Positions 33,501 to 43,782 of a DNA stretch of 64,000 bases are shown piece by piece. Both the position numbers and the translations under genes were made by a program. Under the pieces are notes generated by a model, which was not told the DNA's origin, did no database searches, and saw only the letters and a program-made list of their open reading frames with translations. The stretch is taken from assembly GCA_000388065.2 (NCBI GenBank), contig KB932201.1; one strand, written 5' to 3'. The number at the start of each line of letters is the position of its first letter. The first letter of the stretch is position 1. Source of the stretch: Fonticula alba ATCC 38817 (lineage: Eukaryota; Protista; Nucleariida).

Positions 33501-36500
33501 CCCATTCGACGGAAGCCCTGCCTGGGGCCCTCGGCGGGGTGCCCGGCAGCCCGCGCACGCCATCCGTCCCGACATCCGGCCTCAGTGCCCGGTCAACCCC
33601 CTCGCTGCCACTGCGATCGCCATCCCGCCACTCGTTGGACTCGGATCTGGACCTGCTTGATGGTTTTGGCGGTACCGCCGGCATTCCCGGAAGCGGGCTC
33701 ATCTCCACCGCATCATCCACCACCAACCTGGCCGGAACCTCCGCCGAGTATGCCACGCTCATGAGTGCGGACATCGAGCGGGCTCTGGGTCAAGGGGCCC
33801 TCCTGTCGTCCGGTGGCTGTGTCGGCTCGGCTGCCACCTCGGCGATCAACACCGGCGTGACGGCTCCCTCCTCCGACATCATCCTCGAACGCGGGGACCT
33901 GGAATTCATGAATGTCGTGGCCTCCTTCCAGCAGCAGTCGCAGGAAGGGACCACCATGCCCCCGGAGCGGTGGTACCTGCCGGGCCTCGGGCCCAACAAC
34001 ATCTGGAATGAGACGGACTCGGTGCAGATCTTCCACCCGACCACGGATGAATGGGCTGTTCACTCGGCCAAGTTCAACAGCCTGGTCATCTTCCTGACCT
34101 CGCCTTATCATCTGACTTATGCGTCGAGCCAGAACTTCCTGAATGTCTTCCTGCTTACCCTGCAGTTGTTCTCGTCGCCGAGTCTCTTCCTGGAGAAGCT
34201 CGTCGAGCGGTGCGTGCTCTGTTCTCTTGGCTTGCTCCTCCTCCTTCTCTTCTTCTTCTTCTTCTTCTTTTTGGCCACACGTGCCCCTCTCCCTTTCCCT
34301 GCCTTTGCATGTCCTGACGTTCGCTGCTCTTTGCCCGGCTCTCCCTCTCCAGGTTCAATGTCCCGCCCTGCCCGAGCCACATCAACCCTGTTCTCTATCA
34401 GATTCAGGTCGTTGATCCGGTCCAAACGCTGGTCTGTAACATCCTGTGCGTTGTGGCCTGCTCTTTTGGCCGTTTCTCTTGCCCGCCAGAGTCCCCCCCC
34501 CCCCCCCCCGGTGCTCTGTCTCCGGTTCATCTGTCCATCTCTCCATTTCCCAGCTGGACCAATCTCTGACCGACATCCCTCTGCCTCCCACCCCCTCCCG
34601 CTCGCTCTTTTACCTTGGCCACACAACTACGCACGCACACTCTCATGCAGTGAGCGCTGGATCGCGGAGGGGCTCCAGTTTGATATCATCCCCCTGCCGG
34701 AAATCATCGACGACGTGCGGCGTTTCATCGCCCAGGAAATTCACAGTTTCGAGCCGGATCGAGCCAAGCGCATCTCCAGCTCCCTGCAAAAGATGGAGGA
34801 TAACTATGCCCATGGCTTGGCCCAGTTGGACTCATTGAAGCTCTGCTACCCGGAGCTGCGCCCGACGTCGCCCTTCTGCTCGACCTCCTTTGTCATGAAG
34901 ACCGGCCCTCGGTCGCTGGCACACCACCTCACTGCCATTGATGCGGATCTCTTCCGGGCCATCCGCCTGGCGGAGTTCACCGCCATCACGGACAAGCAGA
35001 GTTCCCCGAATTTGCAGCGCCTCATCACGCACACCAACCAGCTTACCAACTGGGTCATGCGCTGCATCCTTCGGGTGGACCTGGTTGAGATCCGCCGCAA
35101 GATGATCCTCTGCTTCTTCGAAGTCCTACAGGTGCGTCCTCGTCTTTCTGACTTCTTGCATTTGTGTGTCTGTGTGTGTGTGTAGACGTGGCTGCATGGC
35201 TTGCATATTGACTTTGCCTTGGCTGCCTCCGTTCCCTTGCATTTTCCTTTTCCTCTTCCCCTCCCCCCCCCCCCCTCGGCTTGATGCAGGAGCTTTATCT
35301 CCTGAAGAACTTCAATTCGCTGTTTGCCATCCACTGCGCCCTGTCGCACACATCCATCAGCCGTCTGGCACAAACCTTCCGCGGGCTGCGCACCCGCCAT
35401 ATGGCCCCCTACCGGCGCATCTCCGAGGTCTTCGCGATGGATAGCAACTACCGGAACTATCGGCCGATGCTGGCGTCGGTTCTCTCGCAGCCGGATCACT
35501 GCCGGCCGCCCGTCATCCCGGTCATCCCGATTCTCATGAGTGACTTGACCTTCATGCTGGAGGGCAATCAGACGCTGACAACCAAGCGACGCATCAACTG
35601 GCAGAAGTGCACCCTGCTGGGGAATGTCCTGCTGGACATTTCCCGTGCTCAGGCGGCTTCCATCTCCTATCGGAACATGCTGAGCCTCAATCTGCCTCGC
35701 ATCCTTTGGGAGCACATCCACGGGTCGTCCTCCTCGGATGCCGAGCTCTACCAGATGTCCTACGCGCTGGAGCCCCCGGACAATGGGTCCCACTCTCGGC
35801 AGTCATCCAGCAGTGGGTCCGGCATCCGGACCTCCCCTTCGCTCTCATCCTTGACCATGGGCGCGACCTTCAACTTGGGTGAGGGATCGCGCTTGAGCTT
35901 TGCCGGCTCCGGCTTCGGGTCCAATGGCGGCAGTGTGGCGCAGCGTGGTGGCAGTGGCTCCCACGGAACCGGCGGAGCCGGTGGCAACAGCAGCGGCTCC
36001 ACCTCGCGCCTGGGCTTCCTCACCTATCGCCGCCGGCCGCGGGCCTCGGTGGATGGGCTTTTCGAAGGAGGCGGCAGTTCCAGCGCTGGCGCCTCCCCAG
36101 TGCCCCCGTCGCCGACCGTGTCCGGCACCGGTCCCCACACCCCGGACCATGGTGCCAGCGACATGGTGAATGGATCTTCGGCCAGCGAAAATAAGCTCCG
36201 CCGGGCCCTGTCCCACTTGAATGGTCGCTCGCCCGGCTCCGGGCCCCGTGGCCCGACGCACCCTCCTCCCCCGGTGGCTGTACACGCCCGCCGGGTGTCG
36301 GAGCCGGTTTCCTCGCGCCCGCGTTCGGTCTTCATGATGGGCGGGTCGTCATCCTCCGGGCCGAATGCTGCACCGACGGCCACCGGCCGCACCGGATCCT
36401 TTGGGTCCTCCTCTTCCTCCTCCTCCTCAGGTGCAGGAGCCGGCATTGGCGGGGGCAGCACCCTGCGTCGGGTGTCGGAGCCCTCACCACGCCCAGCCTC

Positions 36501-37436
36501 GGTCATGCTAGCCTCGGACCACAATGGGGGAGTCTACTCGTCGCCGGTGGCCGATCCCTTTGGCAGCCCGGCCATGCCGGTCGGCGGGTCAGCCGCGGGG
36601 TCTCTCTCGGACCTGGGCAGCTTCGACCGGACGTCGGTCTTCTTCGGTGGCTCGGGTAGCGGGAGCGACCCCTTCCTGGCCACAGATGACTCGTCGGTCT
36701 TTTACTCGACCCCAAGTGGTGGCATGCCGCCGCCGGCCTCGTCCGGAACCTCCCGACTCATGGGCCCTGCCGGGACCTCCTCCTCCTTCCGGTCCGACTC
36801 TCCGCCGATGGTCATCACCAGCTCCCCCTCCAACTTGTCACTGGCCTCGGCGGCCGGCACCGCCCCGGCCTTGAGCCGGACCAAGTCCGACCACCAGCGT
36901 CGATCATTGTCTGGGGCCGCGTCCACTGGGGATCTGCCGCACATGGCCTCGGAGACCCTGCCGCGGTCACGCACCTCGGGCGTCAGTCTCCGGTCAAGCG
37001 GGGCCTCCAGTGTGTCGGTGAACCAGCCGCCGCCGCCCACGGCCACCCACGGTGGCGGAGCCCCCGGCCCGCAGCTCCGGACCGGCACCAACTCAATGTA
37101 CTCGAGCCACTCGTCGCTCCATTCACAGCGGTCCACCGCCACCACGGCGTCCGACCGGCCGAGCTCTCCCTCAAGCAGCATGGGCACAATGTTGAATGCC
37201 CTGGGATCGCTGTTCGGGTTTGGCCGCCGTGACCAGTAGTCGCGCTCCCTCCCCCCCCCCCCCCCCATGCCCTGCCACGCCATGCTAACAGGCCCCGGCG
37301 CGCAGATGTCGAGAGCGGCTCGGCCGCCCAGATCATCGAGAACTTCGGCTTCTTCCCGGAGCCCCTGGCCGCCTTCCCGCAGCCCGCGAGCGAGGCCGAA
37401 GCTGGCTTTGGCCCCCTCCCCCCTCGCTCTTGTTAG
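30177..37436 (+). CDS. Ras guanine-nucleotide exchange factor (REM plus CDC25 domain) with an unassigned helical N-terminal region and long Ser/Gly-rich linkers; multi-exon. Stop at 37239 if unspliced, or 37436 with a terminal exon
   Basis: REM: VHSAKFNSLVIFLTS...FLNVFLLTLQLFSSPSLFLEKLVER. CDC25: LAHHLTAIDADLFRAI...HTNQLTNWVMRCIL...RRKMILCFF|ELYLLKNFNSLFAIHCALSHTSISRLAQTF...PVIPVIPILMSDLTFMLEGN...INWQK. GT-AG junctions include 30463/30665 and 30871/31043; some N-terminal junctions are uncertain. Confidence 0.88.
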
Positions 37437-38149
37437 ATTCCCCCTCTCTTCAGATTTCACACCCCTCCTCCAGTGAGTGTCCCCCCCCCCTTCCCTCGCG
37501 CATGCGCCTCGGAGCTCGAATATAGTTTTGTCCTTGGAACTGGCCCTTTTCTTCTGGCATTATTCCCCCCCGGGAAGGGAGGAGGATTACGCGATTTTTC
37601 GTGCCGCACATCAACACATCCACAGGCGGCCTCCTGATGCCACGAGGGAGGAGGAGAGACACGGAGAAACAGCAAATATTGGGTTTATTGTTTGGAGGGG
37701 AAAAGATGAGAATACTGAACTTGCACATGGATGTATATGAGGTAGGCAAATGCGCAAATGTAAGCACAGCAGAATGTTAAGGGAGTTGTGGCTGGTCTAA
37801 TGGGTAAAACCCGATCCGAGAAAGGAGAGAGAGAGAGATCGGGCGGTGGGAGACGTCGCTGCCTCGCGTGCATGCACAAGACAAAAGGGTACACACAGGC
37901 GCACGGCGCGAGAGAGAGGGAGAGAGAGAGAGAGAGAGAAAAGTGCCAGGCCACGGGGAGAGGACGGCACACATTCGCCTTCCTCTCCCCGCCTGTGGTC
38001 CTTTTTTATCCTCCCCTTCCGGTGCAAGGCACTGGAAAGAGAAAGAGCCCCCCTCTTGGGGGTCGTCGCACTCTTTTTGTCGCTCAGCCGGAGGACCCCC
38101 TCCTCCTCTTTCTCCCTGCCGATCTCTGACCCTGGCTTTGAATCTGACC

Positions 38150-40649
38150 TTAGTCGATGTCCATGTCGGTGGCCGGGGCGGAGGAACCCTCGTCGGTGGT
38201 CTCCATGGGGGAGTCGGTGGTCGGGGGGGCGGCCTCCGCACCCTCGGGAGCGGCGGCGGCCGGCTCCGGCTCAACGGGCTTGGGCTTGGGCTTGGAGAAG
38301 GTGCTGTTGGCCAGGAGCTGGAGCTGACGCAGGGCCGCGTCGACATTCTCCGACAGGAGGGTCGGGTGGGCATGCTTGGGAGCCGCCTGCTGGGCCAGGA
38401 TGCGAGAAGTCATGTCGGCCAGGGCGGCGGTGGCGGCGGACATGACCGCCTCACGGGCCTCGGCGTCGATGTGCTCATAGCGCTCCTCCTGGGTGCGGGT
38501 CAGCTCGACGATGGAGGTGACACCGGCCTGGAACTTCTTCTTGGCCTCCTCCAGGGCCTCGGCCTGGTCGAAGCGGTACTGAGCCGCGTCGCCGAGCACA
38601 CGGACCTCGCTCAGGCGGGCCTCGTAGACGCTCTTGGAGACGTTCTCACCCTCGCCGTACAGCCAATCCTCGGTGTCACGCAGGAGGGTCTTGTAGGCCT
38701 CCATGTCGGCCTCGGCCACATACTCGGCCAGGGTGGTGTCCAGCAGGTCACGCATGCGGTAGATGAACTCCTCCAGGGAGTTCTTGCGCTCGAGGGTGTC
38801 GAAAACAAGCTTGTCCTCGGCGATCATCTCGTTCTCGCGCTCGCGCAGGAGGTTCAGCTGCTCGGCCGACAGCGAGGGGAAGGTGTACACCACGGGCAGG
38901 GTGATGGCATCGCGAACGGTGGTCGGGCCGGCGGGGGCCTCCTCGCCCTCGGCCGGCTCGGCGGCCGGGACGGTGTGGCGGACGTAGAACTTGGTGAACT
39001 CGAAGACACCATCGAGGTTGATGTGGGACAGGACCTCCAGCTGGTTGAACTCGGTGCCCTCCTTCAGCGGCTCGGCCGGGGTGATGAAGTGGGCAATCTC
39101 CTCCGGGGTCTGGTGGGGGAGCTGGGCCGGGTTGGCGTAGATGGCAGACACACGCGAGCCCAGGGCCGGGTCAAAGGCAATGGAGCGCTTCTTGCCGAGG
39201 AACTGCTCGCCGGCGGTGAGCACCACACGGGTCATCTCCTCGCCAGCGGGGTTGGTCCAGCGCAGGGCGATGTCATGGCTGACGGTCTGGCGGACGACAT
39301 AATCACGGACGCTGAACATCGGGGACTGCATGGCGCACTGGAAGGCGGCACCACGGGCAGCGGCCTCATCGAAGTTCAGGGTGGCCGAGAAGGTGACCTC
39401 GCTGCCGAAGAAGTTCTGGACGTGCTCCTTGACGATGGGCACACGGATGGACCCGCCGACCTGCTCGACGAAGTTGACCTCGGCCTTGGTGATCTTGGCC
39501 TGGGCCAGGGCGGCGGCGATGGTCTCGTGGACGACGGCAATCTGGGAGCCAATCATGGCCTCGAACTCCTCGCGCTTGAGCATGGCGCTCAGGTCGATGG
39601 TGTCGGTGAGGCACTCGACGTTCAGGGCACCGATCGGGTTGGAAGAAAGGATCTTCTTCAGGCGCTCGCAAGCCACGGTCAGGCGCAGGATGGCCTTCTT
39701 GTTCTCGAAGATGTCGTACTTGTGCTTCTCCTGGACGATGGCCGCAAAGTGGCGGACCAGCAGGCTATCGAAGAAGCGCCCGCCGATGGCGGTGGTGGTG
39801 GCCATGCCGATGATGGAGGCCTCCTTCTGGGTGAACTTCACCACGGACACGGTGAAGGCGGTGTGGCCCATGTCGGCGAAGACAACATAGCGCGGGGCCT
39901 CGGTCTCCTCGGGGAGCTCACCCTTGCGGGTGATACCGTAGAGCAGGGCACAGGCGGCGGGCTCGCTCATCAGGCGGGCAACCTTCAGCCCGGCGATGGA
40001 GGCCGCATTGTTCAGGGCAATGCGCTGACGGAAGGTGTAGTGAGCCGGCACGGTGAGGCAGACCAGCTCGACCGAGTTCTTCAGCTCGGCCTCGGCGGTC
40101 TGCTTGACCTTGGTAAGCAGCATGGCCTGGAGCTGGGTGAAGTCGAACTCGGTCTGCTCGCCGAGGAAGCTGACCGACGCGCCGGGAGAGCCGTCCGGCA
40201 TCTCGACCAGGTTGCAGGTGACGTGCTCGGCCTCGGCCTGGACGGCGGGATCGTTGAAAGAACGACCGATCAGGTGCTTCATGTTGCCGACGGTGTTCTT
40301 GGCGTTCATCACCTCACCAGCCTTGGCGGTCTCACCGAGGACACGGTTGGTCGGGGTGAAACCGACGAGGGTGCTGTTGGGGGATGAGAGAGGCGGGGGG
40401 GGGGGAAGATGAGCGTGTGAGACGTGGAAGGGCAACAAGAGCGAGAGAACGAGAGAGGGAACGAGAGCGAGAGAGGGGAGGATAGGGGGGGGGGGCGAGG
40501 CGGGGGAGCGTAGAGGGAGAAGGAGCGGGCAAAGAGACGCACGGAGTAAAGCGGTTGGAGACCTCATTGACCAGGATGTCAATGCCGCGGTTACGCGCGG
40601 CGGCAATGACGGTCTTGTAGGTACCAAGATCAACACCAACGGCAGCCAT
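38150..40649 (-). CDS. HSPA4: Hsp110/SSE-family chaperone and Hsp70 nucleotide exchange factor; join(40649..40543,40373..38150), 776 aa
   Basis: VGVDLGTY..., [16 protein letters not shown]|TLVGF, Hsp110-type [46 protein letters not shown], and C-terminal DMDID with no ER-retention signal. Strong C/G-ending codon bias. Confidence 0.96.
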
Positions 40650-40848
40650 TCTGTTATGGGCAGTCTATATGGCGGGGAAGAGGGGGCGAGGAGGGAGAAG
40701 AGGAGGTTGGGAGCAAGGTCAGTGTCGGCCGGAAAAAGAGAAATGGGCCACAAGAGGCCTGTGCGCCCAGAGGAGATCGGAGGAAGGGGGAGAGCAGGAG
40801 AGGGACAGGACAGCACTCGACAAGGGAGGAGGGGAGGAGAAAACAAAC

Positions 40849-41109
40849 CAGAGACGGGTCGCGACTGGCAAGCGGATCGTCATTGGCATTGGCCGAGAAC
40901 CGGAAGGAGGGGAATCCGCTTCCCGCTGCTGCCTGGCGTCGATGCCAGAGAGTGAAGAGCAGCCCAACTAGCGAGCCGACAAGGGCAAGGAAGAGCGGAT
41001 TGGCCAGCAGGGTGTCGAGGCTGTTCACGCGCTGGCTCGCCAGGAATCCCTGGATCGAGGTCTTCACGGTGGAAAGCGCCTGGCACCACGCCCCTTCACC
41101 GCACGCCAT
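40849..41109 (-). CDS. Putative upstream coding exon with one transmembrane helix (87 codons); candidate N-terminal extension of Hsp110, or a uORF/small membrane protein
   Basis: ATG at 41109 in AGCATGG context. Encodes MACGEGAW...LANPLFLALVGSLVGLLFTLWHRRQ...RDPSL and ends at donor CTG|GTTTGT. Pyrimidine-rich 184-nt interval to acceptor ATATAG| at 40665, after which 15 nt (TAHNR) lead in frame to the Hsp110 ATG. Confidence 0.55.
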
Positions 41110-41172
41110 GCTTGCACTGGGTGGGGGAAGGAGAGGGATGGAGGAGGAAGGCCTTCGGCGTGGCCTGGGGGC

Positions 41173-41203
<31 letters not shown>

Positions 41204-43782
41204 AGAGAAAGAGGGAGAGGGAGAGAGAAAGAGGGGGGAGGAGAAGGGGGGGAGGAGAGGAGAGAGCATCCGAAAGGAGAGGAAATGCAGAAGGGGAGAA
41301 GGGGGTTCGCCATGGCATTGGACCACAACGATGGAGGAGAGAGGGAGAAGGAGCAAGCCGGAGAGGAGAAGATCAGTGACTAACTCATCTGGGTTGGGTA
41401 GGTGGGGGGATGGAGAAGAGGAGGGATGGAAGTGCGTGTGCGTGTCTGAAAAAATGTGTGTGTGTGTGCGTGCACATGCGTGTGCATTTGTGTGTGCACA
41501 GGTGGGGTAGGTCGCACTTTGGGGGAGGAGGAGGAGGAGGAGGAGGAGGAGGAGGAGGGAGAAGCGACGCAGGGGAGAGGATTGTCACAGGGAGGATATC
41601 GGGAGGGGGGGCACACAGCACAAACACCACTTAAAGAGGGAAAGTGGCAAGACGGACAAACACACATGGGGGGAAGGAGAACACTGGCAAACAGGGGACA
41701 CAGGAGAGAAGGAGGGGGAGAGGGAGAGGACACAGCACTCGGGAAAGTCTAGAGGGAGGAGAGACGCATGGAGGGCAAAGGGGAGGCAGGGAGGCATGGT
41801 GCAAGGGATGGGTGAAGGGGAGGAAGGGGGTCGTACGGAGAATCTGGAGGAGGGGGAGACGAAGCAGGGGCACAGATACGCGGGGTCAGAGACCGAGGAG
41901 ATATAGATGAGAGTGTGGAAACGGAGGGAGCATCAGTAAACAGTGAGATAAAGGGCGGGGGAGGGGGGGGGGGGATAGGGAGGCAGGCGACACAATCATG
42001 CACAGCACACGGGCCCCGGAGGAGCCGGGCTTGGGTTTCCAGGGGCGGAGCGACACGGTGCGACGGGGAGAGGAGACATCGTCGCGCGGGTGTGACCGCG
42101 TGTCGAAGCCGGCTCGACCCCGGGCGCAAACGTCACATGGGGGATAAGGGCAGGAAGGAAAGAGAGAGAGAGAGAGAGAGAGATGGGGACAGATGGGAAA
42201 CGAACCAGAAGCGGTGAGTTCTTCTGAGAGGGAGAGGGGAGAGGGTGGGGGAGAGAGGGATTCCGCCGATTTAGATTTCGCGGCCCCAGAGGAGCCGCCC
42301 CACAAGGCACGCCCTTGAAAAAGGCGGCCCCGACCCCACACTTGCACAGGCACACACACACACACAAGAGACACACGCGGGGGGGTGGCACGGAGCGGGC
42401 CGTTGCCGGGTCCACCCGCGCGGAAAGGGCTGTACTCCCTCTGACACCCACACACGCAGACACAGGCACCTTCAGGTCCCCCACCCGTGAGTACGGCGTG
42501 CGTGTCGTCAGGCGCACCGGCGCCTCTGCTCAGTGCCAGGGAGCAAGAGTGACAGGGTCATAGAGTGAGGAAGCTAGACCACCCAACCGCACGGATGCTG
42601 CGAACTCGCGCCGTCCGCCCCCATGGCCCCTAGGGCTGGAAAATGTCGGCCCCGCCCTCGCCCCCCCTCCGGCGCATGTTCGGGCGCGCGGGCGAAGCGT
42701 GAAGAAAAATCCAGCGTGGTCCCGGGAAGAAAAAAAGGGGCTTCCCAACGGCAAGTACCCAGAGAGATGAGAAGGGCTGGGGCCGGGGGGGGTGGGGCTG
42801 TACCATGCCCCTCCGCCCCCCGGGGACAACGGGGAGGACGCACCAGGGGGCCGCGAGCCCCACCCGGCGAGGGCTCCGCCCGCGCGTGCATCCATCTGCC
42901 AGGCCTCGAGACAGAAGAGCAGCGACTCGCGGACCCGGCCCAGACGCCTCGGGCACACCCACACAAACTCACCGAGCCGACGCCGTGACTGACGGCCGTT
43001 TTTCCCGAGGCTCTAGGCGGCAGGCTCCACAGACTGGCCGACGGGAGCCGGCCACTGCCCTCGGACAGGCACACGGCCAAGGGCCTGTCCACACATCCCA
43101 GCCCAACAGTGGTGACCTCCAGAGGCCCCGCCCCCCGCCCCCCCCCCCCCCTCTCCCGAAGGAATCTCCACAATCACCTCGATTAGCGTGGAAGGCGGAC
43201 ACGCGCCCACCACCCGCCAATTGTCCTTTGTTCCAGTATGTTCTGGCTTTCCAGGGCTGCCGCCAGCCTGCACGTCGTCTGACGCGCCGGGGGCGGCCTT
43301 CGTCGGGCTCCTCAGCCGCGTACAAATGCCCTCATGACGATCCGCCCGCGACGGATCTAGTTTGGCCTGGATGTGCGCACGCCTGGGACAGGCTGCGCTG
43401 GTACGTGGGCTCCGGCGCCGGCCAGCCCCCTGGGGGGGGGGGGGGGGGGCGGGGGCGGGGGCGAACAAGCGGGATGAGGGAAGAGGGCCGAAAGGGGGAC
43501 GACGTTGACTGGCGATTACTGGCAACGGATCCCCCGCCCTCACTGGTGCCCGACAGACAAAAGACGGAGCCGGGAAGAAAGGGAAGGAAGAAAAGCGAAC
43601 TCTCGCGCTCCGCCCGCCCCCCCCCCCTGACCCGCCACCGCTGCCACATTACCCCACACACGCTGCCCAGCCATGCGCATCCTCCCCCCCCCCCCACCCC
43701 CCACCCGCCCAGCACGACGCGCGCCAGGTGCGTAGTCAATTCTAGAAGGTGCCATGATGGCGTGTGGGGCGTGATCTCGGTC

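Follow-up and report, generated by a model that had tools for sequence, protein, structure and literature searches.

The Hsp110 gene of Fonticula alba ATCC 38817 is transcribed into two mRNA forms that share a leader exon and differ by the skipping or inclusion of a cassette exon. The main mRNA skips the cassette exon and encodes a soluble protein of 776 aa. The minor, exon-including form would encode a protein of 868 aa, in which the chaperone is preceded by a 92-residue head with one predicted transmembrane (TM) helix. That the longer protein is a real, functional, membrane-anchored minor isoform is proposed tentatively, its probability being judged to lie just short of even. What is new here is only the interpretation of an annotated isoform as a candidate membrane anchor on an Hsp110, offered as a hypothesis drawn from sequence.

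The gene, H696_00594, lies on the minus strand of contig KB932201.1 of assembly GCA_000388065.2 (100% database match), and positions are those of the 64,000-nt stretch of this contig that was analysed, hereafter the window. By homology its product is a cytosolic-type Hsp110/Sse protein. In a profile search of the Hsp110 body, residues 2-592 of exon 2 matched the Pfam HSP70 profile (PF00012) at 3.4e-107, and exon 1 aligned to profile positions 1-33. The closest PDB structure was yeast Sse1 (7e-136, residues 4-647), a far longer match than that to canonical Hsp70 (~1e-75, NBD only); the human Hsp105 NBD was also among the best solved relatives, and the top named database relatives were fungal Hsp88/Sse1 proteins at 37-44% identity. 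The 776-aa form has the same architecture as the cytosolic Hsp110/Sse proteins (Sse1, Hsp88, human HSPH1/HSPA4): it begins MAAVGVDLG at the NBD, following the canonical N-terminus MxxVG(I/V)DxG, has no signal peptide and ends, as the first-pass annotation had reported, in DMDID, without a KDEL/HDEL-type retention tail. Nucleotide exchange on Hsp70 is its putative activity, on the basis of Hsp110/Sse membership.

Two products are on public record. The 868-aa product (XP_009492747.1 / KCV73046.1) is identical to the spliced model of the first-pass annotation, including the in-frame 92-aa extension, and the gene model is therefore already public, though unnamed; the 776-aa soluble product (XP_009492748.1 / KCV73047.1) is filed as "hypothetical protein, variant". 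Both carry the name "hypothetical protein" only. No paper was found that mentions the locus or its accessions, and an exact-protein look-up returned no match to the 87-aa product of the cassette exon, nor to the 776-aa form, since the index covers just the longest product per gene. According to the public annotation, the upstream neighbour on the same strand (window ~43783 upward) encodes 807 aa with no Pfam match. The downstream neighbour (window ~34150-37239) is a 1879-aa RasGEF_N/RasGEF gene on the opposite strand, convergent with Hsp110.

Skipping and inclusion of a cassette exon

The RNA data consisted of four small transcriptome assemblies from 2012 (runs X1-X4), from two samples of a single study; assembled contigs of this kind demonstrate presence, not absence. 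The contigs represent spliced RNA, because a 169-nt intron within the Hsp110 coding sequence has been removed in all four runs. Together with the sequence they define the following features, listed in the direction of transcription:

42202..42249, minus strand: non-coding 5' leader exon, in both mRNA forms (first 27-48 contig letters in four runs, and the minor contig)
41165..42201, minus strand: intron between leader and cassette exon in the minor form (no contig on the interval except 18-19-nt chance pieces)
40849..41164, minus strand: 316-nt cassette exon, alternatively included (contig of X1 record 4, and composition)
40945..41010, minus strand: codons of the predicted TM helix, residues 34-55 (LLANPLFLALVGSLVGLLFTLW), followed by HRRQ (hydropathy)
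40665..40848, minus strand: 184-nt intron, GTTTGT...ATATAG (no contig on the interval; splice implied by the 868-aa public protein)
40543..40664, minus strand: first canonical coding exon (all four major contigs start their match exactly at 40664, with 0 mismatches)
40374..40542, minus strand: 169-nt phase-2 intron, GTGCGT...AACAG (transcript-confirmed, joint 40373/40543 in four of four runs)
37949..40373, minus strand: last exon, with the remaining Hsp110 coding sequence and at least 200 nt of 3'UTR (contigs, 0 mismatches over 2425 nt)

In each run the dominant contig, at a depth of 67-81, is composed of 37949-40373, 40543-40664 and 27-48 letters at 42202-42249. In all four dominant contigs the leader is followed immediately by 40664, with the TM exon left out. 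The acceptor at 40664 is therefore real, but its usual partner is the leader ~1.5 kb upstream, an exon that the first-pass annotation had missed. From the acceptor (40665/40664), 15 nt of UTR lead to the canonical Hsp110 ATG at 40649 (MAAVGVDLG...). The 169-nt intron has CT..AC ends on the plus strand, i.e. GT..AG in the sense of the gene. The Hsp110 stop codon is at 38152-38150, and over 37949-38149 the contigs reach about 200 nt beyond it, ending at a masked repeat (37900-37948).

The leader has its 5' end at or beyond 42249 and occurs in one copy in the window, on which ground an origin as a spliced leader or from a paralogue within the window was rejected. Its best donor motif is CTG/GTTCGT at 42206/42205, and the contigs align on to 42202 with one mismatch. 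Around this point (42199-42206) the alignment of the leader overruns the best donor by 4 nt and is followed by three unaligned letters, in both isoforms and in all runs; apart from the leader 3' end, the mRNA shows 0 mismatches in about 2,500 nt. The simplest reading is that the discrepancy may be a local assembly error or a polymorphism beside a CT repeat, and an unusual donor may be a further possibility. A scan of the window for heat-shock elements gave six matches against 7.1 expected, with none near the leader.

The inclusion form is represented by one minor contig (X1 record 4, 348 nt), which was assembled in one of the four runs and is missing from the second run of the same sample. Its depth of 4.9 against 80.7 for the major contig corresponds to about 6% inclusion, as measured by contig depth in one run. 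It carries the same 30 leader letters as the major contig and then aligns to 41161-40849 (41164..40849 by arithmetic). Thirty common letters would be k-1 for 31-letter assembler words, as expected of two branches of one graph. The minor contig departs from the genome exactly at the predicted donor 40849, and its final two letters do not fit the genome. The 5' boundary of the exon at 41164 (ccccag/G) was inferred by arithmetic, because repeat masking covers 41162-41265 in the read comparison.

Upstream of the exon, 41165..42201 forms part of the roughly 1.5-kb intron of the major form. It is CT-rich, with a purine fraction of 0.05-0.32 in most bins, and contains CT, CCT and CA simple repeats; CT dinucleotide runs, (CCT)n and CA/TG repeats are found at 41162-41265 and 41442-41569.

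Both forms are thus present in RNA, skipping contigs in four runs and an inclusion contig in X1, and the isoform switch is the skipping versus the inclusion of a cassette exon. This differs from the toggle proposed by the first-pass annotation, which relied on a choice between alternative 3' acceptors or start codons; that mechanism is unsupported, and the toggle is a cassette exon entered from acceptor 41165/41164. The second acceptor on which the proposal drew, at 40651, does exist in the sequence, but it was used by no contig in the four runs. Retention of the 184-nt intron was likewise seen in no contig of the four runs. The exon frame stays open across this intron by chance of composition as far as a stop at 40654 (frame 40654-41328), out of frame with the Hsp110 ATG and ending 4 nt ahead of it; a stand-alone 151-aa TM protein arising in this way is unsupported by any contig. 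The interval at 40848-40665 is pyrimidine-rich, as first described, with a purine fraction of 0.18-0.25 against 0.10-0.20 in the transcript-confirmed 169-nt intron.

No contig spans the 40849/40664 junction, as the minor contig has only two letters after 40849, too few to show their destination. A join to 40664 is nevertheless indicated by the annotated 868-aa product, whose public sequence across the exon junction agrees with it, and by 40664 being the only acceptor seen in use. Alternatively, the donor at 40848 might be spliced elsewhere, for example to 40651 to give an overlapping uORF, or the minor contig might be an assembly fragment and the 868-aa model a construct of the annotation pipeline, in which case the exon would be at most a translational damper of Hsp110. 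The shortness of the contig beyond 40849 leaves room for such an outcome, and a splice to 40650 would bring translation to a stop after seven codons, but every observed transcript of H696_00594 uses acceptor 40664, 40651 occurs in no contig, and the public annotation has exactly 40849/40664 as one of two transcript-derived isoforms. This alternative is considered improbable.

Coding character and predicted topology of the 92-residue head

The coding content claimed for the exon is present on the minus strand as first described. After 55 nt of 5'UTR, an ATG at 41109 opens 87 codons to 40849, which read MACGEG...LLANPLFLALVGSLVGLLFTLWHRRQ...DPSL, include the hydrophobic stretch LANPLFLALVGSLVGLLFTLW followed by HRRQ, and end in phase 0 at CTG/GTTTGT (40849/40848), the donor at which the minor contig leaves the genome. 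After ATATAG, which ends at 40665, ACTGCCCATAACAGA (codons ACT GCC CAT AAC AGA) leads in frame into the Hsp110 ATG at 40649. The context of ATG 41109 is strong (AAGCATGG; A at -3 and G at +4), and no ATG precedes it in either the leader or the cassette exon. Downstream of 41109, out-of-frame ATGs are found in GCCAATGCCAATGAC, so that leaky scanning would be unproductive. With a first AUG in strong context and unproductive leaky scanning, translation of the exon-including mRNA is expected to give the long protein.

The coding part of the cassette exon is exon-like in composition. Its purine fraction is 0.38-0.53, against 0.05-0.28 in the flanking introns, and its base composition by codon position follows GC3 0.75 > GC1 0.64 > GC2 0.53. 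In a codon model trained on Hsp110 exon 2 the exon frame scored -0.39, the best of six, the other frames lying between -0.81 and -2.01; by the same model Hsp110 itself scored +1.0 and the RasGEF ORF next to it, a real gene of weak bias, -0.45.

These properties bear on the principal alternative, namely that the exon is splicing noise or a young neutral exon, whose mRNA exists and is perhaps translated but has no selected role, all Hsp110 work being done by the 776-aa form. This is quite possible, at somewhat below an even chance. An exon-like coding part between CT-rich introns, coding periodicity in the best frame of six and a strong AUG context all speak against it, and the codon score of -0.39, well below the +1.0 of Hsp110 though close to that of the RasGEF ORF, weighs against an anchored isoform. 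When the exon was shuffled 20,000 times with dinucleotides preserved, 8.9% of the shuffles gave an in-frame extension of 60 aa or more, as might be expected of a neutral exon, but in just 0.015% did such an extension also reach a KD19 of at least 2.0. Of all 87-aa stretches free of stop codons in the six frames of the window, 2.3% reached KD 2.17, and these were mostly translations of TG repeats. A TM-grade helix with charge asymmetry is very rare in shuffles (0.015%) and occurs in about 1-2% of random open frames of this genome, which argues against neutrality.

Membrane anchoring of the 868-aa form is predicted from hydropathy and flank charges. On the Kyte-Doolittle scale, in 19-residue windows, the maximum is 2.17 at residues 34-52, and the next best value in the whole 868-aa protein is 1.38. 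The head has a single TM-grade hydrophobic segment, 22 residues in length (residues 34-55), and of its 15-residue flanks the N-terminal one has a net charge of 0 and the C-terminal one of +3. The positive-inside and charge-difference rules leave the more positive flank in the cytosol. The N-terminus is therefore predicted to be translocated and the chaperone body to be cytosolic. Two acidic and two basic residues occur among the first 33, and the head is unlike a mitochondrial presequence because of these acidic residues. The signal-anchor extension of the first-pass annotation stands in so far as there is a single hydrophobic helix with a more basic C flank; it does not stand as the main product, the TM exon being included at ~6% and seen in one of four runs.

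A cleavable signal peptide of the Grp170 type was found in neither form, the major form having none and the long form having a helix at 34-55 with a basic flank. The reverse topology, in which a type II signal-anchor or uncleaved signal would place the Hsp110 body in the ER lumen as a Grp170/Lhs1-like exchange factor for BiP, is very improbable: SRP and Sec61 can recognise a hydrophobic segment at the N-terminus, and a membrane-anchored protein would not need HDEL, but the flank charges of +3 and 0 predict the opposite orientation, the body is nearest to cytosolic Sse1/Hsp88, and DMDID is not an ER retention signal.

Relatives of the head and comparison with known systems

The extension is an orphan. 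A word search among Hsp110-sized proteins found no relative of the head, and an exhaustive phmmer search against 1.84 billion representatives found no credible one, its one match being spurious: the protein concerned (P0122, E 1e-5) was rejected as a relative, as it is a 295-aa protein with four 65-aa tandem repeats that each match weakly, an example of a repeat-inflated false match. In the ESM Atlas there was no usable feature match to the head, only generic helix matches, and a Pfam match to DUF5671 was sub-threshold (0.072) and was set aside. Metagenome contigs held no relative of the head; the whole Hsp110, used as a positive control, found no close relative there either, and the missing head relatives therefore say nothing about conservation. 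Close relatives of Fonticula are unsampled in present data.

Across the family, 115 of 127 other Hsp110-family proteins, mostly fungal, start canonically at the NBD, as the 776-aa form does, and a further ten, with gene models that are odd or truncated at the 5' end, do not have the NBD landmark motif. None of the 127 has a hydrophobic N-terminal head; the only clear N-terminal extension among them consists of 29 hydrophilic residues. The search for a TM-extended Hsp110 in relatives that the first-pass annotation had suggested was thus negative within this set, and no paper was found that describes an Hsp110 with an N-terminal TM isoform.

Returning to the neutral exon, the evidence in its favour includes the depth of 4.9 against 80.7 in one of four runs, the orphan sequence of the extension and the canonical N-termini of relatives. 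In addition, non-animal eukaryotes in general skip exons infrequently and show no bias towards events that preserve the frame (PMC6142364), which lowers the prior that any single event is functional and counts in favour of splicing noise. For the anchored isoform, the case draws on transcripts, annotation, start codon, composition, helix, chance estimate, family and the precedent of Snl1, and leaves it only slightly short of an even prospect. It is opposed by the low inclusion, the orphan head, the canonical N-termini of relatives and the position of the helix, which begins at residue 34, later than in the classic anchors of Tom20, Tom70 and P450.

The candidate anchored isoform may be compared with several known proteins. 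Hsp105 alpha and beta isoforms differ internally, not by a membrane anchor. By comparison with cytosolic Hsp110/Sse proteins, the Fonticula 868-aa form would gain a 92-aa TM-bearing head from a 5' cassette exon. Isoforms of Hsp105 produced by alternative splicing or initiation are known, and the Hsp110 family is portrayed as exchange factors that are soluble in the cytosol or nucleus, with Grp170 as their lumenal ER counterpart (PMC4753570). Grp170/Lhs1/HYOU1 proteins belong to the same superfamily and are ER-associated through an N-terminal hydrophobic sequence (PMC4753570). In Grp170, however, the signal is cleavable, the protein lumenal and the tail of KDEL/HDEL type, whereas the Fonticula protein is of Sse type and ends in DMDID; a typical signal peptide would have a shorter helix lying nearer the N-terminus, and the charges of the Fonticula head predict a cytosolic body, unlike Grp170.

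Tom20, Tom70 and cytochrome P450 likewise have one N-terminal helix with basic residues after it and most of the protein in the cytosol. Their helices begin within the first 10-20 residues; in the Fonticula head, 33 residues, two of them acidic, precede the helix. The closest functional parallel is Snl1, a yeast BAG-domain Hsp70 exchange factor held at the ER by an amino-terminal TM region with its catalytic domain in the cytosol (PMC3962485). The logic is the same as that proposed for the Fonticula 868-aa form, although Snl1 has a BAG three-helix bundle, an unrelated fold with no sequence similarity, and its anchor is a constant part of the protein, whereas here it would come from an optional exon.

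Proposed role and significance

In the favoured model, transcription starts at the non-coding leader exon near 42250. In most transcripts the leader is spliced straight to 40664, and these encode the soluble 776-aa Hsp110. A small fraction of transcripts include the 316-nt exon (41164-40849), and a join of this exon to 40664 would put its first AUG, at 41109, in the reading frame of the chaperone. The minor product would be an 868-aa protein with an orphan 92-residue head and one TM helix at residues 34-55. Judging from the basic C flank, its short N-terminus would cross the membrane and the entire Hsp110 body would remain cytosolic. So oriented, the 868-aa form may be anchored in the ER or in the outer membrane of mitochondria, the two sites favoured by the first-pass annotation, and may serve cytosolic Hsp70 as an exchange factor concentrated at that site, like Snl1 in yeast. 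The fuller proposition, that regulated inclusion of a lineage-specific 5' exon places part of the sole cytosolic Hsp110 of Fonticula alba at the ER or mitochondrial outer membrane, on the side facing the cytosol and in convergence with Snl1, is rather unlikely.

The significance of the isoform is tempered by its being already annotated, rare in RNA and not conserved in anything sampled. If real, it would be the first membrane-anchored Hsp110, supplying Hsp70 exchange where proteins are imported or where the quality of membrane proteins is controlled. It would also exemplify how exon skipping can diversify the proteome of a unicellular relative of the fungi, where such events are thought to be mostly non-functional (PMC6142364). 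Furthermore, if an optional exon tethers Hsp110 to a membrane, this would be a new means of bringing Hsp70 cycling to the membrane surface.
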